A DNA stretch of 62,298 bases from Thalia democratica (Eukaryota): the NCBI GenBank assembly GCA_965202585.1, contig CBDBBG010000333.1:1-62298 (forward strand). The letters run 5' to 3'. Shown here in pieces: positions 1 through 36,700 of the stretch; the first letter of the stretch is position 1, and each line of letters opens with the position of its first letter. A program made the translations under genes and the position numbers. The notes below the pieces were generated by a model that searched no databases, was not told the origin of the DNA, and saw nothing but the letters and a program-made list of their open reading frames with translations.

Positions 1-1942
1 TATCTAGCTAGAGTTCCCTTCTTAACAGTTGCATAAAAAAAGTATAGTAGAGAAATTTGGCAAGCTAGGTATTTAATAAATAATGGGCTTTATAATTTGG
101 AAGGAAATATGTTTTTGATTCTTTATCACCACAAAGTTGATTAAGTATGTTTATTTGTGTTGTTGAGTTTAGTAGTCATTAGTAGCTTGTGTAATTAATT
201 GGTGATCCACCTAATCTTTAGATTTAAAAAGTACATAGCTTAAAACAAACAAGTATCGTCGTTTTGAGTTGTCTCATACATAGTTTAAAAAAGAGTTACA
301 AAAAATTGTAACAAGCTGTTCTTTTTTACCGTGGAATCATTTTGTAATTTGTCATAGCCACAGAAAAAATGAGTTCAACAAAACAAGTATGAGCTTTGTA
401 AGCAGAAAGATTATTTCAATTGTATGTTTGTTTTAAACAATCACTGTTGTCTACATTAGTTTGACTGTTCAACTTTTAAACAGTTTTTTATTGTTTCATT
501 TGCATTCTGATAAATAAAACTAATACTTATTTGACAATCAGACCTTAAACAAATATCATTGAGCATTTTTAGTATCAACGCAAAGTAAATTTTTCTTCTC
601 ATTTAATATAATGTCTTATTTAAGCATAAATTTTTAGTTAGTGACAGATTGATTTTTTTATTAAACTAACAACAAATATGTATTGAGTGTTTGAAAAACA
701 AGTTTACAAAGTAAAATGAACTAGAATAAGTTTTGTTTAAACAATAAGTTAAACAAGAAAATTCCCATTAAAAAACATTTTTACCTAACATTTAAATACT
801 AGTGAAGCAGAAAAACTTATTCTACATTATCAAAAGTAGTTTAAAATGTCAAGTAGAACTACAAAAACTGAAGTAAGTGTAACTAACTAGTAGAAATAAA
901 AACAGAGAAATTCAGTTTTAGAAAGTTTATTTAGAAGTTATTGAAATACACTAACTGTTACTTTTTACCAACACGCACAATGTAGATATAAATTTGTACA
1001 TTTTTTGTCGCTTAGTTTAAGCTTGTTTGACACTGTTTACTCGACATTAGTAGCTGCTTAAATCAACTGGTGGTCCTGATTACTTTAGATATGTAGAAAC
1101 ATAACTTTCAACAAACTACTAGAGTTGTTAAAGGTCAGTAAGTTGTCTCATATCTAGTTAAAACAAGTACCTTTTACTTTGAAAACTAGAATAATAAATT
1201 ACTTAAAAAAGTACAAGCAGCTACTTTTTTGTGTTTTACCAAGTTTCAACCAATGAGCTGGTTTGTTTTGTGTGTTTATGTTTTGAATTGAAAATGTTTC
1301 TTGAATATGCTAAACAGAAGTTAGCTTTGAAAGAAGGAATATGTTGTTTTACTTGAAAACACATCTGTAATTTTTTGTTTTGAACAACCATTTTTGTATT
1401 CATTTATGTATTCGTAACTTTTTAAAACGTGTTACATGGCTTCAATTGCAGTTAAGTTGATAAGAAGAACTCGTTTAAAAAGTTAAAGCTCGGTTGTGTT
1501 ACTAATAATCAACAACAACTTAAAATAAAGTTACAACTAAGTTTTTGCATGTTATAAGTGATATACATTTTTGTTTAAGAAGATGATACTTTTTTGTAAG
1601 CACTTATTTATTGAATGTTTCAACAGAACTTCAGCAAATGAATAAAAACAAGTGTTTTGTACAAAAAGTATTCAGATGAAAAATCTTACGGACAACAAAA
1701 TCAAGTTAGTTAAACATCTTTTACAAACCATTTGATTACAAGCACTACTACTGTTTTTAGACTAATGCAATGCTTTTTCTACAATATAACGAGTTACAAG
1801 TTTATAAAGTATTTGAAACAAAAAAAAAGTGTGTTCATTCAAGTATATGAGTTTTTAATTTACACAAATAAGAATTTATTTGTACTAAGCTTATATTCTT
1901 GTACTTTAAGTAAACATGAACAGCTGGTTCTATTCAAATGGT

Positions 1943-1958
1943 GGTCCTAAAAAGGACC
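1943..1958 (-). terminator. Histone 3' stem-loop of H2B (GGTCCT-TTTT-AGGACC-ACC); recurs in every unit
   Basis: 6-bp stem and 4-nt loop 13 nt past the stop codon; fits the SLBP-bound histone mRNA 3'-end consensus. Confidence 0.95.
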
Positions 1959-1971
1959 GGTTGTTTAGCGT

Positions 1972-3057: not shown

Positions 3058-3412
<355 letters not shown>

Positions 3413-4141: not shown

Positions 4142-4696
4142 TTATTTTTTACAGCTCTTCTTCTTGGATGCTTTTTTGGCTGCCGGCTTCTTCTTGGTTA
4201 CTTTCTTCTTCTTGCTTGCAGCTTTTTTAGATGCTGCCTTCTTAGGAGCGCACTTTTTAGCAGGTCGCTTTTTGGCTGCTGGTTTTTTTGCAGCCTTCTT
4301 GGGAGCACACTTCTTTTTTGGTTTTTTAGCTGGGGCCTTCTTTGCTGCTGGCTTTTTAGCTACTTTCTTTGTCCTCTTCTTGGGCCCAGCAGCTGGCATT
4401 GGAGCAAGCTTGAACGAGCCAGAAGCGCCTTTTCCAGTTGTCTGGAGAAAAGCACCTTTGGTCACGCCGCTGGTAAGTGCTCTCTTCAAGTGAGAATTGG
4501 AAGCTGTGAGGTCAAGCTTGTAGGTGTCCGCGATATACTTTTGTATCTTCTGGCGGGATGTACCTTTTCGTTCCTTCATTGCTCCAAGGGCAGAGCTAAT
4601 CATTTCCCTGTAAGTAGGGTGCTCTGCCTTCTTGGCGCTTGGTCTCTTGGAAGACCTGGCTGGCGCTGGTACTGCTGCTACTGCTGTGGTAGACAT
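4142..4696 (-). CDS. H1: Linker histone H1 (184 aa), unit 1
   Basis: Globular-domain motifs HPTYREMI, GTSRQKIQKYI and GKGASGSFKL; Lys/Ala/Pro-rich C-terminal tail; followed by a histone stem-loop. Confidence 0.95.
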   Translation of the reverse strand: MSTTAVAAVPAPARSSKRPSAKKAEHPTYREMISSALGAMKERKGTSRQKIQKYIADTYKLDLTASNSHLKRALTSGVTKGAFLQTTGKGASGSFKLAPMPAAGPKKRTKKVAKKPAAKKAPAKKPKKKCAPKKAAKKPAAKKRPAKKCAPKKAASKKAASKKKKVTKKKPAAKKASKKKSCKK

Positions 4697-6529
4697 GATG
4701 AATGAATATTAAAGCGACCAAAACGATACTTGCAAGAGTTACTGACTGTGACGAATTGACTGTTGAGCAGTTATGCTTTGCAAGGTACCTTTTACTTCTT
4801 AATATAAGCATTAGCATGTTTGTTTAAGACATATATGCTTATAAAAACTTAGTTGTCTTATTAAGAATGTTGAAAAAGTTCCAGTAAGAAAGAAACCATA
4901 TTTAACTTGTTCTAAAAGTAATTTTTTTAAAGCATTAGTTTGAAAAGTCCAGAAATAACAGCCTGTATCTTACAGCACACCTCTAAATACATTAAGAAAA
5001 ACATAAATGAAACAAAACATGTTAACACACTCCCGACTGAGTTTTCCTTTGCCGCTCACCTAAAGTAATAAAGTTTTAACAAAGCACAAGGTTTTTTTTT
5101 ACCTTAAACAAAATTTCATTATATCGATTTCATGGAGTTTTGTTAATCGTAAGTTCTATCAAGTATGTTCAAGTTAATTACAGTTTAAACTAATGTGTAA
5201 AAAGTAATTCCAAAAGAATAAAAGTGTTCATTTTTTTTAGCTTTACTGCTTATGATTACTCATAAGCAATGTACTCAAAACTTTTATTAAACAGACAACT
5301 AGATAGCTTTGTTGTTGCACATACTAGTAACTTACCTTACAACAATGTTTTCCAAACAACCTTTCAAAAACGTGCTGTACAGTAACTATGATGATACTTG
5401 TTTAAAGTTGTAAACTACATTTAAACACAAACTTTATTTTTCAGTGTGTATGAAAAACTAGTTTAAAAGATAAGTAGTTTAACATTCAATTAGTGTTTCA
5501 AACAACTGATTGAAGCTGTTATACAGTTTAAAAAATAACTGATGCAATTTTGCTCGTTAAACTTAAACCTTGATCAAACTAAGAACTTTAACTTTGCAGA
5601 TTTCAACCGAATAAAGTGTGCTGATAAAAGTGAACAAATGGATTTGGTTGTAAATTTTCCAAACAAAATAAAGTTAATTAAATTCAAAGAAGTAAATAAG
5701 TCGAAAAAGCTTATGAACACTAGCACTAAATTTGAACTTAAACAAAAGCTGATACCTTTTGGATGAAAAATTTTACGTAAAAAAAGAGGTTGGTTTATTT
5801 TTTAAGCAGCATTATATACAAAATAAAATCGAGTAAGAAAATCTAAATGAAAAAGTTTAGAAATAAGATTGACAAACTTAGTGTTTGAATAAAGCTTTGT
5901 TTACAATCAGCACTCATAACCTTTCAATCTATCTTTGAAACTTTTTAACTGGAAAATAATGCAAGTAAGTTTTTTTTTCAAACTTTGTTTTGTCACTTCT
6001 CATAAAGTTTTAAAGTCAGTCGAAACAACATAGAACAACTTACTACTTTCTTGAAACATATTTTGAAACAACAACAGTACTGTCTTTTAAAGTTTACGAT
6101 TGAAGTGCTTACCAAGTTAAACATGTGTTTTAACTGCTTTACTGCTAATAGTGATTTCTTAGTTTACTCAACCTAGATTAATCATAATGTTCTGTACCAT
6201 TGATTTCATTGACTAAATGTTTGCTTTTCAAAATTCGTAACTAGTTATCTCTAGCTTACTGTTAATGTAGTTAAAAACACAGCTTAGGATAAGTTACATT
6301 TTATTCTCGGATGTCGTTAAGAACATAGCTGTTGTAGCAATAACATATAAACTTGAAACAAAGTAACTGTTATCTTATTCAATTATAGACCATATAAAAC
6401 AAAGTATTTGCTTGATTCAAAGTTTTACATTGTTGTTTGCCTATTATGGAACTTGTACCATCACATAATAAGCTGTAAAAAAATGAAGGCTAAAAAAAGT
6501 TTTGGTTTCGCTTTGTCCAGTTTTTTCTT

Positions 6530-9203
6530 CTTCTTTAGATTTATAAAAACTACACAGCTTAAAGCAACAAGTTACAGTAATTTCAGTTTACTTATGTATA
6601 GCGTACATAAGGCTAACAAACAAGTGGTAACAAGTTTTTTGCTTCTTTTCTTTGTACCATGTTTTAGCTAATCAATTGGTTTATTTCATATGCTTGACAA
6701 GATTAGAAAGCTTAAATCAAGTAAGTAGATGTAAGCTTTGTAAAATAAAAGATTTGTTTATACAAGTTCATCATTTTATTAAGGTATTTTGTTTTGTAAA
6801 TTGTGTACTTGTTAATAGTGTTCTCTTTCTTTTGAACAATCGATGTTGTTTACATTTATGTGTTACACCAGTTTTGAATTGTTAAGCATGTTTCAGTTGT
6901 AGTTTAATTGTAATTGAACAGCATTTTTTAAGGACACTAAACATTGTTTGTTATTAACAGTTTAAAACGTTTTCAGTTAATAAGTCAAAGTTTTATTTTT
7001 ATTTCTGTTTAAGCGTACTATTTTCATTGAAAAATACAAATAGTTTTTACAGTGACGTAGGCACAGTATTTTTTTAATAAACTAAAAAACAAATGAAATA
7101 TTGAATTAAAAAATGTCCACAAAGTTAATGAGAATAAGTTTTATTTGGAAAAGAAAGTTAAAAGGAAAAAAGCCACGAAAAAGACACTCAAGTTAGTTAA
7201 AGCTTTTCACTAAGCATTCGATAATAGTAAGCAATAAAGTAAGGATTAGAGCAGTTATCTAGCTAGAGTTCCCTTCTTAACAGTTGCATAAAAAAAGTAT
7301 AGTAGAGAAATTTGGCAAGCTAGGTATTTAATAAATAATGGGCTTTATAATTTGGAAGGAAATATGTTTTTGATTCTTTATCACCACAAAGTTGATTAAG
7401 TATGTTTATTTGTGTTGTTGAGTTTAGTAGTCATTAGTAGCTTGTGTAATTAATTGGTGATCCACCTAATCTTTAGATTTAAAAAGTACATAGCTTAAAA
7501 CAAACAAGTATCGTCGTTTTGAGTTGTCTCATACATAGTTTAAAAAAGAGTTACAAAAAATTGTAACAAGCTGTTCTTTTTTACCGTGGAATCATTTTGT
7601 AATTTGTCATAGCCACAGAAAAAATGAGTTCAACAAAACAAGTATGAGCTTTGTAAGCAGAAAGATTATTTCAATTGTATGTTTGTTTTAAACAATCACT
7701 GTTGTCTACATTAGTTTGACTGTTCAACTTTTAAACAGTTTTTTATTGTTTCATTTGCATTCTGATAAATAAAACTAATACTTATTTGACAATCAGACCT
7801 TAAACAAATATCATTGAGCATTTTTAGTATCAACGCAAAGTAAATTTTTCTTCTCATTTAATATAATGTCTTATTTAAGCATAAATTTTTAGTTAGTGAC
7901 AGATTGATTTTTTTATTAAACTAACAACAAATATGTATTGAGTGTTTGAAAAACAAGTTTACAAAGTAAAATGAACTAGAATAAGTTTTGTTTAAACAAT
8001 AAGTTAAACAAGAAAATTCCCATTAAAAAACATTTTTACCTAACATTTAAATACTAGTGAAGCAGAAAAACTTATTCTACATTATCAAAAGTAGTTTAAA
8101 ATGTCAAGTAGAACTACAAAAACTGAAGTAAGTGTAACTAACTAGTAGAAATAAAAACAGAGAAATTCAGTTTTAGAAAGTTTATTTAGAAGTTATTGAA
8201 ATACACTAACTGTTACTTTTTACCAACACGCACAATGTAGATATAAATTTGTACATTTTTTGTCGCTTAGTTTAAGCTTGTTTGACACTGTTTACTCGAC
8301 ATTAGTAGCTGCTTAAATCAACTGGTGGTCCTGATTACTTTAGATATGTAGAAACATAACTTTCAACAAACTACTAGAGTTGTTAAAGGTCAGTAAGTTG
8401 TCTCATATCTAGTTAAAACAAGTACCTTTTACTTTGAAAACTAGAATAATAAATTACTTAAAAAAGTACAAGCAGCTACTTTTTTGTGTTTTACCAAGTT
8501 TCAACCAATGAGCTGGTTTGTTTTGTGTGTTTATGTTTTGAATTGAAAATGTTTCTTGAATATGCTAAACAGAAGTTAGCTTTGAAAGAAGGAATATGTT
8601 GTTTTACTTGAAAACACATCTGTAATTTTTTGTTTTGAACAACCATTTTTGTATTCATTTATGTATTCGTAACTTTTTAAAACGTGTTACATGGCTTCAA
8701 TTGCAGTTAAGTTGATAAGAAGAACTCGTTTAAAAAGTTAAAGCTCGGTTGTGTTACTAATAATCAACAACAACTTAAAATAAAGTTACAACTAAGTTTT
8801 TGCATGTTATAAGTGATATACATTTTTGTTTAAGAAGATGATACTTTTTTGTAAGCACTTATTTATTGAATGTTTCAACAGAACTTCAGCAAATGAATAA
8901 AAACAAGTGTTTTGTACAAAAAGTATTCAGATGAAAAATCTTACGGACAACAAAATCAAGTTAGTTAAACATCTTTTACAAACCATTTGATTACAAGCAC
9001 TACTACTGTTTTTAGACTAATGCAATGCTTTTTCTACAATATAACGAGTTACAAGTTTATAAAGTATTTGAAACAAAAAAAAAGTGTGTTCATTCAAGTA
9101 TATGAGTTTTTAATTTACACAAATAAGAATTTATTTGTACTAAGCTTATATTCTTGTACTTTAAGTAAACATGAACAGCTGGTTCTATTCAAATGGTGGT
9201 CCT
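6530..9203. repeat. Three diverged ~0.87-0.94-kb tandem sub-repeats in the spacer (D1 ~6530-7463, D2 ~7464-8334, D3 ~8335-9203); present in every unit
   Basis: Collinear shared blocks: CTTTAGAT at 6533/7471/8338; 22/26 match of 6831-6856 vs 7687-7712; TCAAGTTAGTTAAA at 7188 and 8956; TGGTG(A/G)TCC at 7455/8323/9194. Confidence 0.85.
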
Positions 9204-9226
9204 AAAAAGGACCGGTTGTTTAGCGT

Positions 9227-9586
9227 TTATTTTGAGCTGGTGTATTTGGTAACAGCTTTAGTTCCTTCTGAAACTGCGTGCTTTGACAACTCGCCGGGGA
9301 GCAAGAGCCTGACAGCAGTTTGAATTTCGCGGCTGCTAACAGTTGACCTCTTGTTGTAATGAGCCAAACGTGAAGCCTCTGCTGCAATGCGCTCGAAGAT
9401 GTCGTTGACAAATGAGTTCATGATTCCCATTGCCTTGCTGGAAATTCCGGTGTCGGGGTGCACTTGCTTCAAAACTTTGTACACGTAGATGCCAAAGCTT
9501 TCTTTGTTTCTCCTCCTTCGCTTCTTCTTGCCGTCGACCGGAGCGGTCTTGGCTACTGACTTCTTCGCGCCTTTGGTTGCTGTCAT
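9227..9586 (-). CDS. H2B: Histone H2B, unit 2
   Basis: Same translation as unit 1. Confidence 0.96.
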
Positions 9587-9749
9587 GATGATGTGTGGAC
9601 TTCTGTCTCGGCGCCGGTTTATATCCTGAAAAATTATGCAAATTAGCATAGTTCCGTACGCGAACGATAGCTGGTTTCTCTCACTTCACAATTCTCTCGT
9701 TTGTTGTAAATATTTTGGTGGTCCTGAAAAGGACCTGGTTTTTTTTAAC

Positions 9750-10130
9750 TTAGGCTGACTTTTTTGAAGCGGTCTTCTTAGGCAATAGTACTGCCTGGAT
9801 GTTTGGAAGAACACCACCTTGAGCAATTGTGACGCCTCCGAGAAGTTTGTTCAACTCTTCGTCGTTGCGAATAGCTAGTTGCAAATGGCGAGGAATGATC
9901 CTGCTTTTCTTGTTGTCACGAGCAGCGTTACCGGCAAGCTCGAGCACTTCTGCGCTCAAGTACTCGAGAACGGCAGCCAGATAAACTGGAGCACCAGCTC
10001 CGACTCTTTGGCTGTAGTTGCCGGTGCGCAACAGGCGGTGCACGCGACCGACTGGAAACTGCAGTCCTGCACGGGAAGACCTGCTCTTCGGCTTAGATTT
10101 GAGTTTTGATCCTTTACCACGTCCTGACAT
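9750..10130 (-). CDS. H2A: Histone H2A, unit 2
   Basis: Same translation as unit 1. Confidence 0.97.
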
Positions 10131-10312
10131 TTTGTTGTTCGAATGATTGTGATGATAGCTTGCACAGCTCAATATACAACTCATACCTAACCGCGTCGAA
10201 CAAAAAACTAATTTGCATATGTCATAGCTAATGCTTAATCTTGTCAAAAGTGTTGTAAAACTTTTATATTGAATTAGGTGGTCCTAAAAAGGACCGGGTT
10301 TGCTAAAAGCGA

Positions 10313-10660
<348 letters not shown>

Positions 10661-10804
10661 TTATATACAAGCTGTTACGGACGCGTACGGTAACTACTAA
10701 CTAATTTGCATACTCAAAAAAGTCTCTTAACTTACGTTCGGTTAAGTTTTTCTCACTGTCAAGGTTTTAAGGTGGCCCTGAAAAGGACCGGTTTTAGCTA
10801 ACGC

Positions 10805-11296
<492 letters not shown>

Positions 11297-11396
11297 CTAA
11301 TTTGCATATTTTCAACTTAGCATTGTTTTATGCATTTTGAGTTACGTTATATTTTGTTTGAGTGGTCCTGAAAAGGACCTTGGGTAAAAGAACAAC

Positions 11397-11951: not shown

Positions 11952-14900
11952 GATGAATGAATATTAAAGCGACCAAAACGATACTTGCAAGAGTTACTGA
12001 CTGTGACGAATTGACTGTTGAGCAGTTATGCTTTGCAAGGTACCTTTTACTTCTTAATATAAGCATTAGCATGTTTGTTTAAGACATATATGCTTATAAA
12101 AACTTAGTTGTCTTATTAAGAATGTTGAAAAAGTTCCAGTAAGAAAGAAACCATATTTAACTTGTTCTAAAAGTAATTTTTTTAAAGCATTAGTTTGAAA
12201 AGTCCAGAAATAACAGCCTGTATCTTACAGCACACCTCTAAATACATTAAGAAAAACATAAATGAAACAAAACATGTTAACACACTCCCGACTGAGTTTT
12301 CCTTTGCCGCTCACCTAAAGTAATAAAGTTTTAACAAAGCACAAGGTTTTTTTTTACCTTAAACAAAATTTCATTATATCGATTTCATGGAGTTTTGTTA
12401 ATCGTAAGTTCTATCAAGTATGTTCAAGTTAATTACAGTTTAAACTAATGTGTAAAAAGTAATTCCAAAAGAATAAAAGTGTTCATTTTTTTTAGCTTTA
12501 CTGCTTATGATTACTCATAAGCAATGTACTCAAAACTTTTATTAAACAGACAACTAGATAGCTTTGTTGTTGCACATACTAGTAACTTACCTTACAACAA
12601 TGTTTTCCAAACAACCTTTCAAAAACGTGCTGTACAGTAACTATGATGATACTTGTTTAAAGTTGTAAACTACATTTAAACACAAACTTTATTTTTCAGT
12701 GTGTATGAAAAACTAGTTTAAAAGATAAGTAGTTTAACATTCAATTAGTGTTTCAAACAACTGATTGAAGCTGTTATACAGTTTAAAAAATAACTGATGC
12801 AATTTTGCTCGTTAAACTTAAACCTTGATCAAACTAAGAACTTTAACTTTGCAGATTTCAACCGAATAAAGTGTGCTGATAAAAGTGAACAAATGGATTT
12901 GGTTGTAAATTTTCCAAACAAAATAAAGTTAATTAAATTCAAAGAAGTAAATAAGTCGAAAAAGCTTATGAACACTAGCACTAAATTTGAACTTAAACAA
13001 AAGCTGATACCTTTTGGATGAAAAATTTTACGTAAAAAAAGAGGTTGGTTTATTTTTTAAGCAGCATTATATACAAAATAAAATCGAGTAAGAAAATCTA
13101 AATGAAAAAGTTTAGAAATAAGATTGACAAACTTAGTGTTTGAATAAAGCTTTGTTTACAATCAGCACTCATAACCTTTCAATCTATCTTTGAAACTTTT
13201 TAACTGGAAAATAATGCAAGTAAGTTTTTTTTTCAAACTTTGTTTTGTCACTTCTCATAAAGTTTTAAAGTCAGTCGAAACAACATAGAACAACTTACTA
13301 CTTTCTTGAAACATATTTTGAAACAACAACAGTACTGTCTTTTAAAGTTTACGATTGAAGTGCTTACCAAGTTAAACATGTGTTTTAACTGCTTTACTGC
13401 TAATAGTGATTTCTTAGTTTACTCAACCTAGATTAATCATAATGTTCTGTACCATTGATTTCATTGACTAAATGTTTGCTTTTCAAAATTCGTAACTAGT
13501 TATCTCTAGCTTACTGTTAATGTAGTTAAAAACACAGCTTAGGATAAGTTACATTTTATTCTCGGATGTCGTTAAGAACATAGCTGTTGTAGCAATAACA
13601 TATAAACTTGAAACAAAGTAACTGTTATCTTATTCAATTATAGACCATATAAAACAAAGTATTTGCTTGATTCAAAGTTTTACATTGTTGTTTGCCTATT
13701 ATGGAACTTGTACCATCACATAATAAGCTGTAAAAAAATGAAGGCTAAAAAAAGTTTTGGTTTCGCTTTGTCCAGTTTTTTCTTCTTCTTTAGATTTATA
13801 AAAACTACACAGCTTAAAGCAACAAGTTACAGTAATTTCAGTTTACTTATGTATAGCGTACATAAGGCTAACAAACAAGTGGTAACAAGTTTTTTGCTTC
13901 TTTTCTTTGTACCATGTTTTAGCTAATCAATTGGTTTATTTCATATGCTTGACAAGATTAGAAAGCTTAAATCAAGTAAGTAGATGTAAGCTTTGTAAAA
14001 TAAAAGATTTGTTTATACAAGTTCATCATTTTATTAAGGTATTTTGTTTTGTAAATTGTGTACTTGTTAATAGTGTTCTCTTTCTTTTGAACAATCGATG
14101 TTGTTTACATTTATGTGTTACACCAGTTTTGAATTGTTAAGCATGTTTCAGTTGTAGTTTAATTGTAATTGAACAGCATTTTTTAAGGACACTAAACATT
14201 GTTTGTTATTAACAGTTTAAAACGTTTTCAGTTAATAAGTCAAAGTTTTATTTTTATTTCTGTTTAAGCGTACTATTTTCATTGAAAAATACAAATAGTT
14301 TTTACAGTGACGTAGGCACAGTATTTTTTTAATAAACTAAAAAACAAATGAAATATTGAATTAAAAAATGTCCACAAAGTTAATGAGAATAAGTTTTATT
14401 TGGAAAAGAAAGTTAAAAGGAAAAAAGCCACGAAAAAGACACTCAAGTTAGTTAAAGCTTTTCACTAAGCATTCGATAATAGTAAGCAATAAAGTAAGGA
14501 TTAGAGCAGTTATCTAGCTAGAGTTCCCTTCTTAACAGTTGCATAAAAAAAGTATAGTAGAGAAATTTGGCAAGCTAGGTATTTAATAAATAATGGGCTT
14601 TATAATTTGGAAGGAAATATGTTTTTGATTCTTTATCACCACAAAGTTGATTAAGTATGTTTATTTGTGTTGTTGAGTTTAGTAGTCATTAGTAGCTTGT
14701 GTAATTAATTGGTGATCCACCTAATCTTTAGATTTAAAAAGTACATAGCTTAAAACAAACAAGTATCGTCGTTTTGAGTTGTCTCATACATAGTTTAAAA
14801 AAGAGTTACAAAAAATTGTAACAAGCTGTTCTTTTTTACCGTGGAATCATTTTGTAATTTGTCATAGCCACAGAAAAAATGAGTTCAACAAAACAAGTAT

Positions 14901-16481
14901 GAGCTTTGTAAGCAGAAAGATTATTTCAATTGTATGTTTGTTTTAAACAATCACTGTTGTCTACATTAGTTTGACTGTTCAACTTTTAAACAGTTTTTTA
15001 TTGTTTCATTTGCATTCTGATAAATAAAACTAATACTTATTTGACAATCAGACCTTAAACAAATATCATTGAGCATTTTTAGTATCAACGCAAAGTAAAT
15101 TTTTCTTCTCATTTAATATAATGTCTTATTTAAGCATAAATTTTTAGTTAGTGACAGATTGATTTTTTTATTAAACTAACAACAAATATGTATTGAGTGT
15201 TTGAAAAACAAGTTTACAAAGTAAAATGAACTAGAATAAGTTTTGTTTAAACAATAAGTTAAACAAGAAAATTCCCATTAAAAAACATTTTTACCTAACA
15301 TTTAAATACTAGTGAAGCAGAAAAACTTATTCTACATTATCAAAAGTAGTTTAAAATGTCAAGTAGAACTACAAAAACTGAAGTAAGTGTAACTAACTAG
15401 TAGAAATAAAAACAGAGAAATTCAGTTTTAGAAAGTTTATTTAGAAGTTATTGAAATACACTAACTGTTACTTTTTACCAACACGCACAATGTAGATATA
15501 AATTTGTACATTTTTTGTCGCTTAGTTTAAGCTTGTTTGACACTGTTTACTCGACATTAGTAGCTGCTTAAATCAACTGGTGGTCCTGATTACTTTAGAT
15601 ATGTAGAAACATAACTTTCAACAAACTACTAGAGTTGTTAAAGGTCAGTAAGTTGTCTCATATCTAGTTAAAACAAGTACCTTTTACTTTGAAAACTAGA
15701 ATAATAAATTACTTAAAAAAGTACAAGCAGCTACTTTTTTGTGTTTTACCAAGTTTCAACCAATGAGCTGGTTTGTTTTGTGTGTTTATGTTTTGAATTG
15801 AAAATGTTTCTTGAATATGCTAAACAGAAGTTAGCTTTGAAAGAAGGAATATGTTGTTTTACTTGAAAACACATCTGTAATTTTTTGTTTTGAACAACCA
15901 TTTTTGTATTCATTTATGTATTCGTAACTTTTTAAAACGTGTTACATGGCTTCAATTGCAGTTAAGTTGATAAGAAGAACTCGTTTAAAAAGTTAAAGCT
16001 CGGTTGTGTTACTAATAATCAACAACAACTTAAAATAAAGTTACAACTAAGTTTTTGCATGTTATAAGTGATATACATTTTTGTTTAAAAAGATGATACT
16101 TTTTTGTAAGCACTTATTTATTGAATGTTTCAACAGAACTTCAGCAAATGAATAAAAACAAGTGTTTTGTACAAAAAGTATTCAGATGAAAAATCTTACG
16201 GACAACAAAATCAAGTTAGTTAAACATCTTTTACAAACCATTTGATTACAAGCACTACTACTGTTTTTAGACTAATGCAATGCTTTTTCTACAATATAAC
16301 GAGTTACAAGTTTATAAAGTATTTGAAACAAAAAAAAAGTGTGTTCATTCAAGTATATGAGTTTTTAATTTACACAAATAAGAATTTATTTGTACTAAGC
16401 TTATATTCTTGTACTTTAAGTAAACATGAACAGCTGGTTCTATTCAAATGGTGGTCCTAAAAAGGACCGGTTGTTTAGCGT

Positions 16482-19206: not shown

Positions 19207-22200
19207 GATGAATGAATATTAAAGCGACCAAAACGATACTTGCAAGAGTTACTGACTGTGACGAATTGACTGTTGAGCAGTTATGCTTTGCAAGGTACCT
19301 TTTACTTCTTAATATAAGCATTAGCATGTTTGTTTAAGACATATATGCTTATAAAAACTTAGTTGTCTTATTAAGAATGTTGAAAAAGTTCCAGTAAGAA
19401 AGAAACCATATTTAACTTGTTCTAAAAGTAATTTTTTTAAAGCATTAGTTTGAAAAGTCCAGAAATAACAGCCTGTATCTTACAGCACACCTCTAAATAC
19501 ATTAAGAAAAACATAAATGAAACAAAACATGTTAACACACTCCCGACTGAGTTTTCCTTTGCCGCTCACCTAAAGTAATAAAGTTTTAACAAAGCACAAG
19601 GTTTTTTTTTACCTTAAACAAAATTTCATTATATCGATTTCATGGAGTTTTGTTAATCGTAAGTTCTATCAAGTATGTTCAAGTTAATTACAGTTTAAAC
19701 TAATGTGTAAAAAGTAATTCCAAAAGAATAAAAGTGTTCATTTTTTTTAGCTTTACTGCTTATGATTACTCATAAGCAATGTACTCAAAACTTTTATTAA
19801 ACAGACAACTAGATAGCTTTGTTGTTGCACATACTAGTAACTTACCTTACAACAATGTTTTCCAAACAACCTTTCAAAAACGTGCTGTACAGTAACTATG
19901 ATGATACTTGTTTAAAGTTGTAAACTACATTTAAACACAAACTTTATTTTTCAGTGTGTATGAAAAACTAGTTTAAAAGATAAGTAGTTTAACATTCAAT
20001 TAGTGTTTCAAACAACTGATTGAAGCTGTTATACAGTTTAAAAAATAACTGATGCAATTTTGCTCGTTAAACTTAAACCTTGATCAAACTAAGAACTTTA
20101 ACTTTGCAGATTTCAACCGAATAAAGTGTGCTGATAAAAGTGAACAAATGGATTTGGTTGTAAATTTTCCAAACAAAATAAAGTTAATTAAATTCAAAGA
20201 AGTAAATAAGTCGAAAAAGCTTATGAACACTAGCACTAAATTTGAACTTAAACAAAAGCTGATACCTTTTGGATGAAAAATTTTACGTAAAAAAAGAGGT
20301 TGGTTTATTTTTTAAGCAGCATTATATACAAAATAAAATCGAGTAAGAAAATCTAAATGAAAAAGTTTAGAGTTAAGATTGACAAACTTAGTGTTTGAAT
20401 AAAGCTTTGTTTACAATCAGCACTCATAACCTTTCAATCTATCTTTGAAACTTTTTAACTGGAAAATAATGCAAGTAAGTTTTTTTTTCAAACTTTGTTT
20501 TGTCACTTCTCATAAAGTTTTAAAGTCAGTCGAAACAACATAGAACAACTTACTACTTTCTTGAAACATATTTTGAAACAACAACAGTACTGTCTTTTAA
20601 AGTTTACGATTGAAGTGCTTACCAAGTTAAACATGTGTTTTAACTGCTTTACTGCTAATAGTGATTTCTTAGTTTACTCAACCTAGATTAATCATAATGT
20701 TCTGTACCATTGATTTCATTGACTAAATGTTTGCTTTTCAAAATTCGTAACTAGTTATCTCTAGCTTACTGTTAATGTAGTTAAAAACACAGCTTAGGAT
20801 AAGTTACATTTTATTCTCGGATGTCGTTAAGAACATAGCTGTTGTAGCAATAACATATAAACTTGAAACAAAGTAACTGTTATCTTATTCAATTATAGAC
20901 CATATAAAACAAAGTATTTGCTTGATTCAAAGTTTTACATTGTTGTTTGCCTATTATGGAACTTGTACCATCACATAATAAGCTGTAAAAAAATGAAGGC
21001 TAAAAAAAGTTTTGGTTTCGCTTTGTCCAGTTTTTTCTTCTTCTTTAGATTTATAAAAACTACACAGCTTAAAGCAACAAGTTACAGTAATTTCAGTTTA
21101 CTTATGTATAGCGTACATAAGGCTAACAAACAAGTGGTAACAAGTTTTTTGCTTCTTTTCTTTGTACCATGTTTTAGCTAATCAATTGGTTTATTTCATA
21201 TGCTTGACAAGATTAGAAAGCTTAAATCAAGTAAGTAGATGTAAGCTTTGTAAAATAAAAGATTTGTTTATACAAGTTCATCATTTTATTAAGGTATTTT
21301 GTTTTGTAAATTGTGTACTTGTTAATAGTGTTCTCTTTCTTTTGAACAATCGATGTTGTTTACATTTATGTGTTACACCAGTTTTGAATTGTTAAGCATG
21401 TTTCAGTTGTAGTTTAATTGTAATTGAACAGCATTTTTTAAGGACACTAAACATTGTTTGTTATTAACAGTTTAAAACGTTTTCAGTTAATAAGTCAAAG
21501 TTTTATTTTTATTTCTGTTTAAGCGTACTATTTTCATTGAAAAATACAAATAGTTTTTACAGTGACGTAGGCACAGTATTTTTTTAATAAACTAAAAAAC
21601 AAATGAAATATTGAATTAAAAAATGTCCACAAAGTTAATGAGAATAAGTTTTATTTGGAAAAGAAAGTTAAAAGGAAAAAAGCCACGAAAAAGACACTCA
21701 AGTTAGTTAAAGCTTTTCACTAAGCATTCGATAATAGTAAGCAATAAAGTAAGGATTAGAGCAGTTATCTAGCTAGAGTTCCCTTCTTAACAGTTGCATA
21801 AAAAAAGTATAGTAGAGAAATTTGGCAAGCTAGGTATTTAATAAATAATGGGCTTTATAATTTGGAAGGAAATATGTTTTTGATTCTTTATCACCACAAA
21901 GTTGATTAAGTATGTTTATTTGTGTTGTTGAGTTTAGTAGTCATTAGTAGCTTGTGTAATTAATTGGTGATCCACCTAATCTTTAGATTTAAAAAGTACA
22001 TAGCTTAAAACAAACAAGTATCGTCGTTTTGAGTTGTCTCATACATAGTTTAAAAAAGAGTTACAAAAAATTGTAACAAGCTGTTCTTTTTTACCGTGGA
22101 ATCATTTTGTAATTTGTCATAGCCACAGAAAAAATGAGTTCAACAAAACAAGTATGAGCTTTGTAAGCAGAAAGATTATTTCAATTGTATGTTTGTTTTA

Positions 22201-23736
22201 AACAATCACTGTTGTCTACATTAGTTTGACTGTTCAACTTTTAAACAGTTTTTTATTGTTTCATTTGCATTCTGATAAATAAAACTAATACTTATTTGAC
22301 AATCAGACCTTAAACAAATATCATTGAGCATTTTTAGTATCAACGCAAAGTAAATTTTTCTTCTCATTTAATATAATGTCTTATTTAAGCATAAATTTTT
22401 AGTTAGTGACAGATTGATTTTTTTATTAAACTAACAACAAATATGTATTGAGTGTTTGAAAAACAAGTTTACAAAGTAAAATGAACTAGAATAAGTTTTG
22501 TTTAAACAATAAGTTAAACAAGAAAATTCCCATTAAAAAACATTTTTACCTAACATTTAAATACTAGTGAAGCAGAAAAACTTATTCTACATTATCAAAA
22601 GTAGTTTAAAATGTCAAGTAGAACTACAAAAACTGAAGTAAGTGTAACTAACTAGTAGAAATAAAAACAGAGAAATTCAGTTTTAGAAAGTTTATTTAGA
22701 AGTTATTGAAATACACTAACTGTTACTTTTTACCAACACGCACAATGTAGATATAAATTTGTACATTTTTTGTCGCTTAGTTTAAGCTTGTTTGACACTG
22801 TTTACTCGACATTAGTAGCTGCTTAAATCAACTGGTGGTCCTGATTACTTTAGATATGTAGAAACATAACTTTCAACAAACTACTAGAGTTGTTAAAGGT
22901 CAGTAAGTTGTCTCATATCTAGTTAAAACAAGTACCTTTTACTTTGAAAACTAGAATAATAAATTACTTAAAAAAGTACAAGCAGCTACTTTTTTGTGTT
23001 TTACCAAGTTTCAACCAATGAGCTGGTTTGTTTTGTGTGTTTATGTTTTGAATTGAAAATGTTTCTTGAATATGCTAAACAGAAGTTAGCTTTGAAAGAA
23101 GGAATATGTTGTTTTACTTGAAAACACATCTGTAATTTTTTGTTTTGAACAACCATTTTTGTATTCATTTATGTATTCGTAACTTTTTAAAACGTGTTAC
23201 ATGGCTTCAATTGCAGTTAAGTTGATAAGAAGAACTCGTTTAAAAAGTTAAAGCTCGGTTGTGTTACTAATAATCAACAACAACTTAAAATAAAGTTACA
23301 ACTAAGTTTTTGCATGTTATAAGTGATATACATTTTTGTTTAAAAAGATGATACTTTTTTGTAAGCACTTATTTATTGAATGTTTCAACAGAACTTCAGC
23401 AAATGAATAAAAACAAGTGTTTTGTACAAAAAGTATTCAGATGAAAAATCTTACGGACAACAAAATCAAGTTAGTTAAACATCTTTTACAAACCATTTGA
23501 TTACAAGCACTACTACTGTTTTTAGACTAATGCAATGCTTTTTCTACAATATAACGAGTTACAAGTTTATAAAGTATTTGAAACAAAAAAAAAGTGTGTT
23601 CATTCAAGTATATGAGTTTTTAATTTACACAAATAAGAATTTATTTGTACTAAGCTTATATTCTTGTACTTTAAGTAAACATGAACAGCTGGTTCTATTC
23701 AAATGGTGGTCCTAAAAAGGACCGGTTGTTTAGCGT

Positions 23737-26460: not shown

Positions 26461-29400
26461 GATGAATGAATATTAAAGCGACCAAAACGATACTTGCAAG
26501 AGTTACTGACTGTGACGAATTGACTGTTGAGCAGTTATGCTTTGCAAGGTACCTTTTACTTCTTAATATAAGCATTAGCATGTTTGTTTAAGACATATAT
26601 GCTTATAAAAACTTAGTTGTCTTATTAAGAATGTTGAAAAAGTTCCAGTAAGAAAGAAACCATATTTAACTTGTTCTAAAAGTAATTTTTTTAAAGCATT
26701 AGTTTGAAAAGTCCAGAAATAACAGCCTGTATCTTACAGCACACCTCTAAATACATTAAGAAAAACATAAATGAAACAAAACATGTTAACACACTCCCGA
26801 CTGAGTTTTCCTTTGCCGCTCACCTAAAGTAATAAAGTTTTAACAAAGCACAAGGTTTTTTTTTACCTTAAACAAAATTTCATTATATCGATTTCATGGA
26901 GTTTTGTTAATCGTAAGTTCTATCAAGTATGTTCAAGTTAATTACAGTTTAAACTAATGTGTAAAAAGTAATTCCAAAAGAATAAAAGTGTTCATTTTTT
27001 TTAGCTTTACTGCTTATGATTACTCATAAGCAATGTACTCAAAACTTTTATTAAACAGACAACTAGATAGCTTTGTTGTTGCACATACTAGTAACTTACC
27101 TTACAACAATGTTTTCCAAACAACCTTTCAAAAACGTGCTGTACAGTAACTATGATGATACTTGTTTAAAGTTGTAAACTACATTTAAACACAAACTTTA
27201 TTTTTCAGTGTGTATGAAAAACTAGTTTAAAAGATAAGTAGTTTAACATTCAATTAGTGTTTCAAACAACTGATTGAAGCTGTTATACAGTTTAAAAAAT
27301 AACTGATGCAATTTTGCTCGTTAAACTTAAACCTTGATCAAACTAAGAACTTTAACTTTGCAGATTTCAACCGAATAAAGTGTGCTGATAAAAGTGAACA
27401 AATGGATTTGGTTGTAAATTTTCCAAACAAAATAAAGTTAATTAAATTCAAAGAAGTAAATAAGTCGAAAAAGCTTATGAACACTAGCACTAAATTTGAA
27501 CTTAAACAAAAGCTGATACCTTTTGGATGAAAAATTTTACGTAAAAAAAGAGGTTGGTTTATTTTTTAAGCAGCATTATATACAAAATAAAATCGAGTAA
27601 GAAAATCTAAATGAAAAAGTTTAGAAATAAGATTGACAAACTTAGTGTTTGAATAAAGCTTTGTTTACAATCAGCACTCATAACCTTTCAATCTATCTTT
27701 GAAACTTTTTAACTGGAAAATAATGCAAGTAAGTTTTTTTTTCAAACTTTGTTTTGTCACTTCTCATAAAGTTTTAAAGTCAGTCGAAACAACATAGAAC
27801 AACTTACTACTTTCTTGAAACATATTTTGAAACAACAACAGTACTGTCTTTTAAAGTTTACGATTGAAGTGCTTACCAAGTTAAACATGTGTTTTAACTG
27901 CTTTACTGCTAATAGTGATTTCTTAGTTTACTCAACCTAGATTAATCATAATGTTCTGTACCATTGATTTCATTGACTAAATGTTTGCTTTTCAAAATTC
28001 GTAACTAGTTATCTCTAGCTTACTGTTAATGTAGTTAAAAACACAGCTTAGGATAAGTTACATTTTATTCTCGGATGTCGTTAAGAACATAGCTGTTGTA
28101 GCAATAACATATAAACTTGAAACAAAGTAACTGTTATCTTATTCAATTATAGACCATATAAAACAAAGTATTTGCTTGATTCAAAGTTTTACATTGTTGT
28201 TTGCCTATTATGGAACTTGTACCATCACATAATAAGCTGTAAAAAAATGAAGGCTAAAAAAAGTTTTGGTTTCGCTTTGTCCAGTTTTTTCTTCTTCTTT
28301 AGATTTATAAAAACTACACAGCTTAAAGCAACAAGTTACAGTAATTTCAGTTTACTTATGTATAGCGTACATAAGGGTAACAAACAAGTGGTAACAAGTT
28401 TTTTACTTCTTTTCTTTGTACCATGTTTTAGCTAATCAATTGGTTTATTTCATATGCTTGACAAGATTAGAAAGCTTAAATCAAGTAAGTAGATGTAAGC
28501 TTTGTAAAATAAAAGATTTGTTTATACAAGTTTATCATTTTATTAAGGTATTTTGTTTTGTAAATTGTGTACTTGTTAATAGTGTTCTCTTTCTTTTGAA
28601 CAATCGATGTTGTTTACATTTATGTGTTACACCAGTTTTGAATTGTTAAGCATGTTTCAGTTGTAGTTTAATTGTAATTGAACAGCATTTTTTAAGGACA
28701 CTAAACATTGTTTGTTATTAACAGTTTAAAACGTTTTCAGTTAATAAGTCAAAGTTTTATTTTTATTTCTGTTTAAGCGTACTATTTTCATTGAAAAATA
28801 CAAATAGTTTTTACAGTGACGTAGGCACAGTATTTTTTTAATAAACTAAAAAACAAATGAAATATTGAATTAAAAAATGTCCACAAAGTTAATGAGAATA
28901 AGTTTTATTTGGAAAAGAAAGTTAAAAGGAAAAAAGCCACGAAAAAGACACTCAAGTTAGTTAAAGCTTTTCACTAAGCATTCGATAATAGTAAGCAATA
29001 AAGTAAGGATTAGAGCAGTTATCTAGCTAGAGTTCCCTTCTTAACAGTTGCATAAAAAAAGTATAGTAGAGAAATTTGGCAAGCTAGGTATTTAATAAAT
29101 AATGGGCTTTATAATTTGGAAGGAAATATGTTTTTGATTCTTTATCACCACAAAGTTGATTAAGTATGTTTATTTGTGTTGTTGAGTTTAGTAGTCATTA
29201 GTAGCTTGTGTAATTAATTGGTGATCCACCTAATCTTTAGATTTAAAAAGTACATAGCTTAAAACAAACAAGTATCGTCGTTTTGAGTTGTCTCATACAT
29301 AGTTTAAAAAAGAGTTACAAAAAATTGTAACAAGCTGTTCTTTTTTACCGTGGAATCATTTTGTAATTTGTCATAGCCACAGAAAAAATGAGTTCAACAA

Positions 29401-30991
29401 AACAAGTATGAGCTTTGTAAGCAGAAAGATTATTTCAATTGTATGTTTGTTTTAAACAATCACTGTTGTCTACATTAGTTTGACTGTTCAACTTTTAAAC
29501 AGTTTTTTATTGTTTCATTTGCATTCTGATAAATAAAACTAATACTTATTTGACAATCAGACCTTAAACAAATATCATTGAGCATTTTTAGTATCAACGC
29601 AAAGTAAATTTTTCTTCTCATTTAATATAATGTCTTATTTAAGCATAAATTTTTAGTTAGTGACAGATTGATTTTTTTATTAAACTAACAACAAATATGT
29701 ATTGAGTGTTTGAAAAACAAGTTTACAAAGTAAAATGAACTAGAATAAGTTTTGTTTAAACAATAAGTTAAACAAGAAAATTCCCATTAAAAAACATTTT
29801 TACCTAACATTTAAATACTAGTGAAGCAGAAAAACTTATTCTACATTATCAAAAGTAGTTTAAAATGTCAAGTAGAACTACAAAAACTGAAGTAAGTGTA
29901 ACTAACTAGTAGAAATAAAAACAGAGAAATTCAGTTTTAGAAAGTTTATTTAGAAGTTATTGAAATACACTAACTGTTACTTTTTACCAACACGCACAAT
30001 GTAGATATAAATTTGTACATTTTTTTGTCGCTTAGTTTAAGCTTGTTTGACACTGTTTACTCGACATTAGTAGCTGCTTAAATCAACTGGTGGTCCTGAT
30101 TACTTTAGATATGTAGAAACATAACTTTCAACAAACTACTAGAGTTGTTAAAGGTCAGTAAGTTGTCTCATATCTAGTTAAAACAAGTACCTTTTACTTT
30201 GAAAACTAGAATAATAAATTACTTAAAAAAGTACAAGCAGCTACTTTTTTGTGTTTTACCAAGTTTCAACCAATGAGCTGGTTTGTTTTGTGTGTTTATG
30301 TTTTGAATTGAAAATGTTTCTTGAATATGCTAAACAGAAGTTAGCTTTGAAAGAAGGAATATGTTGTTTTACTTGAAAACACATCTGTAATTTTTTGTTT
30401 TGAACAACCATTTTTGTATTCATTTATGTATTCGTAACTTTTTAAAACGTGTTACATGGCTTCAATTGCAGTTAAGTTGATAAGAAGAACTCGTTTAAAA
30501 AGTTAAAGCTCGGTTGTGTTACTAATAATCAACAACAACTTAAAATAAAGTTACAACTAAGTTTTTGCATGTTATAAGTGATATACATTTTTGTTTAAAA
30601 AGATGATACTTTTTTGTAAGCACTTATTTATTGAATGTTTCAACAGAACTTCAGCAAATGAATAAAAACAAGTGTTTTGTACAAAAAGTATTCAGATGAA
30701 AAATCTTACGGACAACAAAATCAAGTTAGTTAAACATCTTTTACAAACCATTTGATTACAAGCACTACTACTGTTTTTAGACTAATGCAATGCTTTTTCT
30801 ACAATATAACGAGTTACAAGTTTATAAAGTATTTGAAACAAAAAAAAAGTGTGTTCATTCAAGTATATGAGTTTTTAATTTACACAAATAAGAATTTATT
30901 TGTACTAAGCTTATATTCTTGTACTTTAAGTAAACATGAACAGCTGGTTCTATTCAAATGGTGGTCCTAAAAAGGACCGGTTGTTTAGCGT

Positions 30992-33716: not shown

Positions 33717-36700
33717 GATGAATGAATATTAAAGCGACCAAAACGATACTTGCAAGAGTTACTGACTGTGACGAATTGACTGTTGAGCAGTTATGCTTTG
33801 CAAGGTACCTTTTACTTCTTAATATAAGCATTAGCATGTTTGTTTAAGACATATATGCTTATAAAAACTTAGTTGTCTTATTAAGAATGTTGAAAAAGTT
33901 CCAGTAAGAAAGAAACCATATTTAACTTGTTCTAAAAGTAATTTTTTTAAAGCATTAGTTTGAAAAGTCCAGAAATAACAGCCTGTATCTTACAGCACAC
34001 CTCTAAATACATTAAGAAAAACATAAATGAAACAAAACATGTTAACACACTCCCGACTGAGTTTTCCTTTGCCGCTCACCTAAAGTAATAAAGTTTTAAC
34101 AAAGCACAAGGTTTTTTTTTACCTTAAACAAAATTTCATTATATCGATTTCATGGAGTTTTGTTAATCGTAAGTTCTATCAAGTATGTTCAAGTTAATTA
34201 CAGTTTAAACTAATGTGTAAAAAGTAATTCCAAAAGAATAAAAGTGTTCATTTTTTTTAGCTTTACTGCTTATGATTACTCATAAGCAATGTACTCAAAA
34301 CTTTTATTAAACAGACAACTAGATAGCTTTGTTGTTGCACATACTAGTAACTTACCTTACAACAATGTTTTCCAAACAACCTTTCAAAAACGTGCTGTAC
34401 AGTAACTATGATGATACTTGTTTAAAGTTGTAAACTACATTTAAACACAAACTTTATTTTTCAGTGTGTATGAAAAACTAGTTTAAAAGATAAGTAGTTT
34501 AACATTCAATTAGTGTTTCAAACAACTGATTGAAGCTGTTATACAGTTTAAAAAATAACTGATGCAATTTTGCTCGTTAAACTTAAACCTTGATCAAACT
34601 AAGAACTTTAACTTTGCAGATTTCAACCGAATAAAGTGTGCTGATAAAAGTGAACAAATGGATTTGGTTGTAAATTTTCCAAACAAAATAAAGTTAATTA
34701 AATTCAAAGAAGTAAATAAGTCGAAAAAGCTTATGAACACTAGCACTAAATTTGAACTTAAACAAAAGCTGATACCTTTTGGATGAAAAATTTTACGTAA
34801 AAAAAGAGGTTGGTTTATTTTTTAAGCAGCATTATATACAAAATAAAATCGAGTAAGAAAATCTAAATGAAAAAGTTTAGAAATAAGATTGACAAACTTA
34901 GTGTTTGAATAAAGCTTTGTTTACAATCAGCACTCATAACCTTTCAATCTATCTTTGAAACTTTTTAACTGGAAAATAATGCAAGTAAGTTTTTTTTTCA
35001 AACTTTGTTTTGTCACTTCTCATAAAGTTTTAAAGTCAGTCGAAACAACATAGAACAACTTACTACTTTCTTGAAACATATTTTGAAACAACAACAGTAC
35101 TGTCTTTTAAAGTTTACGATTGAAGTGCTTACCAAGTTAAACATGTGTTTTAACTGCTTTACTGCTAATAGTGATTTCTTAGTTTACTCAACCTAGATTA
35201 ATCATAATGTTCTGTACCATTGATTTCATTGACTAAATGTTTGCTTTTCAAAATTCGTAACTAGTTATCTCTAGCTTACTGTTAATGTAGTTAAAAACAC
35301 AGCTTAGGATAAGTTACATTTTATTCTCGGATGTCGTTAAGAACATAGCTGTTGTAGCAATAACATATAAACTTGAAACAAAGTAACTGTTATCTTATTC
35401 AATTATAGACCATATAAAACAAAGTATTTGCTTGATTCAAAGTTTTACATTGTTGTTTGCCTATTATGGAACTTGTACCATCACATAATAAGCTGTAAAA
35501 AAATGAAGGCTAAAAAAAGTTTTGGTTTCGCTTTGTCCAGTTTTTTCTTCTTCTTTAGATTTATAAAAACTACACAGCTTAAAGCAACAAGTTACAGTAA
35601 TTTCAGTTTACTTATGTATAGCGTACATAAGGGTAACAAACAAGTGGTAACAAGTTTTTTGCTTCTTTTCTTTGTACCATGTTTTAGCTAATCAATTGGT
35701 TTATTTCATATGCTTGACAAGATTAGAAAGCTTAAATCAAGTAAGTAGATGTAAGCTTTGTAAAATAAAAGATTTGTTTATACAAGTTCATCATTTTATT
35801 AAGGTATTTTGTTTTGTAAACTGTGTACTTGTTAATAGTGTTCTCTTTCTTTTGAACAATCGATGTTGTTTACATTTATGTGTTACACCAGTTTTGAATT
35901 GTTAAGCATGTTTCAGTTGTAGTTTAATTGTAATTGAACAGCATTTTTTAAGGACACTAAACATTGTTTGTTATTAACAGTTTAAAACGTTTTCAGTTAA
36001 TAAGTCAAAGTTTTATTTTTATTTCTGTTTAAGCGTACTATTTTCATTGAAAAATACAAATAGTTTTTACAGTGATGTAGGCACAGTATTTTTTTAATAA
36101 ACTAAAAAACAAATGAAATATTGAATTAAAAAATGTCCACAAAGTTAATGAGAATAAGTTTTATTTGGAAAAGAAAGTTAAAAGGAAAAAAGCCACGAAA
36201 AAGACACTCAAGTTAGTTAAAGCTTTTCACTAAGCATTCGATAATAGTAAGCAATAAAGTAAGGATTAGAGCAGTTATCTAGCTAGAGTTCCCTTCTTAA
36301 CAGTTGCATAAAAAAAGTATAGTAGAGAAATTTGGCAAGCTAGGTATTTAATAAATAATGGGCTTTATAATTTGGAAGGAAATATGTTTTTGATTCTTTA
36401 TCACCACAAAGTTGATTAAGTATGTTTATTTGTGTTGTTGAGTTTAGTAGTCATTAGTAGCTTGTGTAATTAATTGGTGATCCACCTAATCTTTAGATTT
36501 AAAAAGTACATAGCTTAAAACAAACAAGTATCGTCGTTTTGAGTTGTCTCATACATAGTTTAAAAAAGAGTTACAAAAAATTGTAACAAGCTGTTCTTTT
36601 TTACCGTGGAATCATTTTGTAATTTGTCATAGCCACAGAAAAAATGAGTTCAACAAAACAAGTATGAGCTTTGTAAGCAGAAAGATTATTTCAATTGTAT

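Follow-up and report, generated by a model that had tools for sequence, protein, structure and literature searches.

The tandem histone array of Thalia democratica raises the question of what fills the long, AT-rich spacer behind each H2B gene, and how that spacer came to be there. We analysed a window of 62,298 bp (contig CBDBBG010000333.1, C342 in our numbering), which is a tandem array of histone quintets with a unit of 7255 bp (7246–7256 bp between neighbours). The window sequence does not contain any N. All five histone genes lie on the minus strand in the order H1, H3, H4, H2A, H2B, and a histone stem-loop is found 3′ of each gene of the quintet. The H2B spacer runs from 9226 down to 4697, where the next H1 starts, and thus comprises 4.53 kb at ~27% G+C. 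Elsewhere in the genome, which amounts to 802 Mb, histone arrays are found on C7, C8, C10, C167, C1248 and C1021. The first-pass annotation had proposed that this spacer contains three diverged, collinear copies of one segment, which we call D1, D2 and D3, and that these copies are in register with the 3′ end of H2B. The features on which the following argument draws are listed here.

4142–4696, minus strand: histone H1 coding sequence of the neighbouring unit, the boundary of the spacer (PF00538 relatives)
4697–6529, minus strand: remainder of the spacer, from D1 to the H1 start, which could not be shown to consist of sub-repeats
6530–7467, minus strand: sub-repeat D1, 938 bp, farthest from H2B, its H2B-proximal end carrying a pseudo half stem-loop
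7455–7463, minus strand: pseudo half stem-loop marking the D1/D2 joint (gene-strand sequence GGATCACCA), with a decayed downstream box to ~7432
7468–8335, minus strand: sub-repeat D2, 868 bp
8323–8331, minus strand: pseudo half stem-loop marking the D2/D3 joint (gene-strand sequence GGACCACCA), with a downstream box to ~8300
8336–9203, minus strand: sub-repeat D3, 868 bp, the true H2B 3′ flank, which continues into the real stem-loop
9174–9218, minus strand: real H2B 3′ stem-loop element (Rfam RF00032, 30.1 bits, E 1.8e-5), the stem-loop proper lying at ~9197–9214
9227–9586, minus strand: histone H2B coding sequence, 119 aa plus stop
13785–16470, minus strand: D1–D3 block of the next unit, recurring every 7255 bp
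21040–23725, 28294–30980, 35550–38226, 42797–45482, 50052–52737 and 57307–59992, minus strand: further D1–D3 blocks
1–1960, minus strand: partial D1–D3 block

Several independent comparisons confirmed that the three copies are homologous. Every sequence string quoted by the first-pass annotation was found at the position given for it. When the spacer (4697–9226) was compared with itself by blastn (word size 7, +1/–1), the strongest match paired 6826–7548 with 7682–8422 (85 bits, 60.6% identity over 794 columns), followed by 6532–6648 with 7470–7582 (62 bits, 71%), 6826–7222 with 8629–8991 (58 bits), 7672–8004 with 8617–8924 (45 bits) and 6642–6836 with 8479–8680 (42.5 bits). All of these matches are on the plus strand and collinear, with offsets of 856–945 and 1803–1837 bp, so the off-diagonals on which the proposal had been staked beforehand are present. 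In 60 dinucleotide shuffles of the spacer, the best self-match scored 33.1 ± 3.2 bits with a maximum of 44. Semi-global alignment of the copies from end to end gave z scores against dinucleotide shuffles of 17.1 for D1–D2, 11.3 for D1–D3 and 7.9 for D2–D3, again placing the real spacer far above its shuffled controls. A profile built from the alignment of D1, D2 and D3 recovered exactly three full-length matches per unit in nhmmer searches, at 6531–7466, 7469–8333 and 8338–9203. D1–D3 are therefore head-to-tail copies in the same orientation whose similarity exceeds chance, as self-blastn, profile and z scores of 7.9–17 agree.

How far the copies account for the spacer was a separate matter. 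The proposal that the spacer grew from such copies held for 2.67 of its 4.53 kb (59%) and did not hold for the other 1.83 kb, which shows no reliable homology to them. Searching 4697–6529 with the D profile gave no match (best E 1.2), and semi-global alignment of this region with the D copies gave z scores of –0.3 to 1.5 apart from one match. That borderline match, 5411–5549 against 8024–8167, reached 44 bits, which equals the shuffle maximum, and a z of 3. Additional copies in 4697–6529 were accordingly rejected on the profile E of 1.2, the top blastn score of 44 bits and z scores mostly at or below 1.5; a set of five is seen solely in the related contig L013. Within this remainder, the H1-adjacent part at 4699–5191 is conserved in all relatives.

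We then considered where the copies begin and end. Read on the gene strand, the genuine H2B element consists of two stem arms separated by a loop of four bases and followed by ACCA. The H2B-proximal ends of D1 and D2 consist of the 3′ half of this stem-loop plus ACCA, while D3 continues into the real stem-loop. The nine-base string GGACCACCA, comprising the 3′ arm and ACCA, occurs without mismatch at 8331 and with one mismatch at 7463. At up to one mismatch there are two such sites on the gene strand of the spacer against 0.03 expected, none of 300 shuffles reached two, and both sites coincide exactly with the D2/D3 and D1/D2 joints. The proposed register with the H2B 3′ end, with the last copy running into the real stem-loop, was thereby borne out; the right-hand ends of the copies, said to recur at 868–871 bp, do so at 868 and 870 bp.

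The sequences around the joints indicate what was copied. Downstream of each pseudo half-stem lies a box of ~23 nt, and these boxes are closer to the real H2B flank of a distant relative, the metagenome contig L014, than to the slightly diverged H2B flank of their own unit. The box is common to the pseudo-copies here, to those of a second relative, L013, and to the real H2B flank of L014, and its match to the L014 flank is direct evidence that the copies descend from an H2B 3′ flank. The stretch shared with the real H2B 3′ end opens with the 3′ half of the stem-loop and extends downstream; upstream of the pseudo half-stems there is no likeness to the H2B 3′UTR or coding end (alignment p 0.14–0.5), and on these values a repeat unit reaching into either was rejected. 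Because homology starts at the 3′ half and is lacking upstream, the duplicated segment must have begun inside the stem-loop and run ~0.87 kb downstream. The two joints are also similar to one another (z 6), which fits descent of both from a single original joint; of the two, the D1-type joint at 7463 is the decayed one.

To place the duplication in time, the divergence between copies can be set against that between units. The spacers of the eight window units differ at 19 of 4520 columns and are 99.8% identical, whereas the sub-repeats within a unit are only ~56% identical to one another, so that old monomers are nested in a homogenised unit, as the two-level repeat described in the first-pass annotation requires. 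Arrays on C7 and C10 are 97–100% identical to the window, and the C8 array is 90% identical to it in the spacer and 94.6% in the genes. Every array variant examined across this range (90–100% identity) carries the same three copies, which were present in all eight window units and in all arrays on C7, C8, C10, C167 and C1248.

Relatives of the H1 gene were found in ocean metagenomes only, and the contigs bearing them (L013, L014–L019 and L024) served as our comparison set. L013 is 87% identical to the window in its genes and 72–83% in its spacer. In this contig D1 has the orthologue A_c3 (71% identity, clade support 100), D2 has the orthologue A_c2 (71–77%, clade support 100), and the orthologue of D3 adjoins H2B (75%). 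A maximum-likelihood tree (IQ-TREE) recovered three clades at 100% support, each uniting one of D1, D2 and D3 with the corresponding C8 copy and a single copy from L013. Path lengths in this tree were 0.78–0.99 substitutions per site between paralogues, 0.35–0.40 between orthologues and ~0.10–0.13 to the C8 array. Since each copy has its own orthologue in L013, the triplication clearly preceded the divergence from the L013 genome, and it is much older than the homogenised arrays of today. An old tandem duplication of the H2B 3′ flank, preceding homogenisation of the 7.25-kb unit, is thus supported by the flank homology, by the lack of homology upstream, by 99.8% identity between units against ~56% between copies, and by the presence of the same copies in all variants with orthologues of their own.

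The number of copies is not the same throughout the group. There are about two in L024 (unit ~6.13 kb), three here (7.25 kb) and five in L013 (contig 8.9 kb), the last recovered by the D profile as follows.

L013, profile copies: 7232–8028 (adjoins H2B), 8029–8411 + 11–216, 232–1077, 1146–1861 and 1960–2754

The second of these is split over the contig ends and was joined by assumption. Two extra copies in L013 pair in the tree (support 95) as sister to the D2 clade and are 84% identical to each other, for which reason we regard them as a later duplication. L024 is 94% identical to the window in its genes, and its spacer is 86% identical to that of the window array and 91% to the C8 type; its unit lacks the sequence corresponding to window 7754–8763, leaving a D3/D2 hybrid copy and D1. 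This two-copy form was not found in the present genome. The more distant L014–L019 have a unit of ~7.09 kb with one recognisable D copy adjoining H2B. Their H2B flank matches the D profile with E values of 1e-12 to 1e-14 (in L014 and L015 over profile positions ~420–878), and they bear a pair of 777–885-bp sub-repeats of their own. When the L014 spacer's own sub-repeats were compared with D through a broader profile, the sole significant match was the copy beside H2B, which had itself been included in that profile. On a smaller scale, some units on C10 carry a 155-bp piece of D2 (window 7825–7979) in three copies. Comparison with relatives thus showed a varying number of sub-repeats, whose gain and loss explains much of the variation in unit length. 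The description of the copies as a fossil layer stood insofar as they are old and decayed; it did not stand as a picture of a layer entirely frozen across the clade, given about two, three and five copies.

These data very probably reflect a nested two-level tandem repeat that is the neutral relic of an old duplication of the H2B 3′ flank, followed by unequal exchange and decay. The process would have started with a tandem duplication, by slippage or unequal exchange, whose breakpoints lay between the arms of the H2B stem-loop and ~0.87 kb downstream. At the joint created in this way, the 3′ half of the stem plus ACCA would directly adjoin the segment's far end. By unequal exchange, the common ancestor shared with the L013 relative would then have come to hold three or more copies, and a long period of decay would have brought the copies to ~56% mutual identity. 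Meanwhile the whole 7.25-kb unit, including the decayed copies, would have spread and been kept nearly identical by concerted evolution at the level of the unit, with occasional later deletion or re-duplication of copies in relatives. The data demonstrate directly the homology of the copies, their register with the stem-loop, the order of events in time, the confinement to histone arrays and the varying copy number; the molecular mechanism and the absence of function are inferences drawn from them. A palindrome or hairpin at the joint as the trigger of duplication was considered and rejected, as the DNA there folds no better than its shuffles.

Two other origins of the pattern have to be weighed against this account. 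Had the sub-repeats started out as satellite DNA, or as a non-autonomous mobile element inserted beside H2B and amplified there, their likeness to the stem-loop would be secondary; a monomer of ~0.87 kb and AT-richness are typical of satellites. However, a 32-nt motif from the D2 joint (up to 3 mismatches) has 83 sites in the 802-Mb genome, all of them at ~7.2-kb spacing, once per unit, inside the arrays on C7, C8, C10, C167, C342 and C1248. Likewise, among the best-scoring candidates, all matches to D-block DNA in its own genome are array copies, so that copies outside the arrays, as a transposable element or dispersed satellite would have, did not appear with this D2-specific motif or among those candidates. 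D3, moreover, is continuous with the real end of the H2B gene in every genome examined and orthologous to the H2B flank in every relative, and no coding relics were found in the spacer, all of which makes such an origin very unlikely. Chance likeness between stretches of low-complexity, AT-rich DNA might be suspected because identity is just ~55–60%, because Tandem Repeats Finder reported nothing, and because the peak of the k-mer offset histogram (867–942 bp) is, taken alone, merely near the 95% null. The silence of Tandem Repeats Finder is explained by a period above its limit and an identity too low for it. Against chance stand gapped alignments far above dinucleotide shuffles, matches that are collinear in all three pairs, and orthologues in other genomes that independently reproduce the three clades; we regard this explanation as refuted by the shuffle controls, alignment z scores and tree, and its probability as negligible.

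Whether the copies do anything today can be approached through the signals they carry. The pseudo-sites at 7463 and 8331 retain the 3′ arm and tail and lack the 5′ arm and loop, and so are not members of RF00032, which is defined by a 6-bp stem, a 4-nt loop and an ACCA or ACCCA tail. The Rfam Histone3 model matched neither of them in the spacer, finding the five real sites only even at E values up to 1. Folding of the joints was no better than that of shuffles (z –1.0 to +1.2), and a search for other structured RNAs in the spacer found none beside the histone stem-loops. The octamer TATGCAAATTAG occurs solely at the four core-gene promoters and is absent from the whole spacer, on which ground spacer promoters were rejected; a scan for sigma-70-type promoters, irrelevant here, gave a count below expectation. 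Relics of histone peptides were sought with all five histones by tblastn and not found (best E 0.2), and this result together with the lack of DNA homology upstream of the joints led us to reject histone pseudogene relics in the spacer. No sub-repeat holds an intact gene control signal of the kind found in rDNA spacers. The copies are most probably without function today: the pseudo-sites cannot form the stem-loop needed by SLBP, and promoter elements are missing from them.

One feature of the joints does bear on a functional alternative, in which the joint element is kept by selection, either for back-up termination of H2B read-through dependent on U7 or cleavage factors or as a repeated site for a histone-locus factor. 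The sub-repeats would then persist because they multiply this element, made up of the half stem-loop with ACCA, the box and, beyond the joint, the first ~40 bp of the next copy. Consistent with this, a block of ~90 bp spanning the joint is the top-ranked one for identity among paralogues (72.7%, compared with 54.3% outside it), shows slightly higher identity than the rest among orthologues (79.5% against 72.0%, within the top 8% of blocks), and contains the box that pseudo-copies here and in L013 share with the real H2B flank of L014. This excess, which a purely neutral model with copies of equal age would not predict, counts as a weak hint; it could reflect gene conversion acting locally, better alignment of a stretch poor in indels, or constraint of some kind. 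Selection on the joint nevertheless appears unlikely. The stem-loop was not rebuilt, with neither an Rfam match nor a fold at the pseudo-sites; compared segment by segment, orthologues are not regularly more similar at their ends (for D1 and A_c3, 58% and 72% at the ends against 73–83% in the middle); the D1-type joint has decayed; the number of copies is not constant, L024 having lost one and L013 gained two; and the identity of the window array to the C8 array stays roughly even over the length of the spacer. That the ~90-bp block is a conserved working element multiplied in the spacer, serving as a fail-safe termination or processing site or as a docking site for the histone locus body, is on this evidence improbable. 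If the block were such an element, the sub-repeats would correspond, in a histone array, to the enhancers or terminators of rDNA spacers.

Setting this probable relic beside known systems helps to define what kind of structure it is. Sub-repeats of the rDNA intergenic spacer (IGS), as in Xenopus and Drosophila, are usually many and similar to each other. They contain duplicated pieces of promoter or terminator, and the length of the IGS follows their number (PMC1215480). The histone spacer resembles this arrangement in having head-to-tail sub-repeats derived from a gene-flanking signal within a tandem gene array, in a copy number that differs between related species and sets the length of the unit, and in the homogenisation of that unit by concerted evolution. 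In contrast to the rDNA case, the duplicated piece is the 3′ flank of a Pol II histone gene whose signal is halved and non-functional, no promoter element was copied, and the copies are long (0.87 kb), few (three) and deeply decayed (~56%). Higher-order repeats of satellites likewise hold diverged monomers inside a homogenised larger unit. The two share old, diverged monomers within a larger unit that has been homogenised (99.8% against 56%), but here the larger unit is a gene quintet with a unique spacer part, and the monomers, which stem from the flank of a gene, fill just 37% of it. Length variants of histone units that arise by spacer insertion or duplication are also known, for example the 4.8- and 5.0-kb units of Drosophila. 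As in those variants, unit length here differs by duplication or deletion in the spacer while the genes stay constant, a process for which the 155-bp triplication on C10 is comparable; whereas those are single recent indels, the present case is an old array of several copies whose register follows a signal for 3′ processing. With members of RF00032, finally, the pseudo-sites share the 3′ arm, the ACCA tail and the downstream flank of the H2B element, and differ from them in having neither 5′ arm nor loop. In the literature available to us, including a 2026 review of histone gene organisation, we found no description of histone-spacer sub-repeats derived from a 3′ flank.

Taken together, the sub-repeats are an evolutionary relic of a known general kind and reveal no new mechanism or functional element. 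Their value is that they show, in a clear case that can be dated, how a tandem array's spacer gains and loses length. Because each decayed copy has its own orthologue in relatives, the copies act as internal markers, which can separate homogenisation at the level of the unit from turnover of the sub-repeats. The number of sub-repeats, in turn, explains much of the difference between the unit lengths of ~6.1, 7.25 and at least 8.9 kb among these relatives.

The spacers of the eight units in the window differ in length by more than 1 bp at one place only, a 9-bp deletion within the third sub-repeat, D3, of a single unit (about 37536-37544; unit 1 equivalent 8516-8524). Elsewhere in the same genome, some histone units on contig C10 carry three tandem copies of a 155-bp piece of the second sub-repeat, D2, and this triplication is a recent small duplication within an old sub-repeat:

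L023 (C10 units) 3080-3234, equal to window 7825-7979: the 155-bp D2 piece, at about 25.72 and 25.97-25.98 Mb of C10

In the non-repeat part of the spacer, 5411-5549 gave a borderline match to D2 8024-8167. This match, which scores 44 bits with z about 3 and is 65% identical across 147 alignment columns, could be the last remnant of another, older copy or could be due to chance.

A more distant relative, represented by the ocean-metagenome contigs L014 and L015, has its own pair of spacer sub-repeats of 777-885 bp, 64-69% identical and beginning about 0.7 kb behind H2B; no homology was demonstrable when this pair was compared with D1-D3. Its H2B 3′ flank also forms an imperfect palindrome of roughly 500 bp, 62% self-complementary and found in two independent contigs:

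L014 298-874 and 6606-7190: sub-repeat pair
L015 5468-5736 and 6249-6487: sub-repeat pair
L014 6091-6586: palindrome
L015 4952-5448: palindrome

Another related metagenome contig, L013, ends in a 370-bp palindrome (8568-8938, 72%) that may be an assembly artefact, and the window contains no counterpart of either palindrome.

Within the genes' own signals, the H3 stem-loop (window 10750-10794) scored 21.9 bits, far below the 30-34 bits of the other four histone stem-loops. Its 3′ arm reads GGGCC, placing a G-T wobble within the stem, and this variant is common to the window, L013 and L014. Scanning the window for the 12-nt octamer element TATGCAAATTAG returned 45 matches against 13 expected. 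The element lies 5′ of H2A, H4 and H3 (window 9587-11345; the same in every unit), with none upstream of H1 or anywhere in the spacer, and is inverted at H2B:

9635-9646, inverted orientation: octamer element upstream of H2B

The genome also holds a second histone array family, on contigs C8 (54.36-54.45 Mb), C1248 and C1021 (stretch L021), whose genes are 94.6% and whose spacer is about 90% identical to those of the window family. The closely related metagenome contig L024 is nearer to this C8-type family (91%) than to the window family (86%), and these identities suggest that the two array families may predate the species split from the source of L024.
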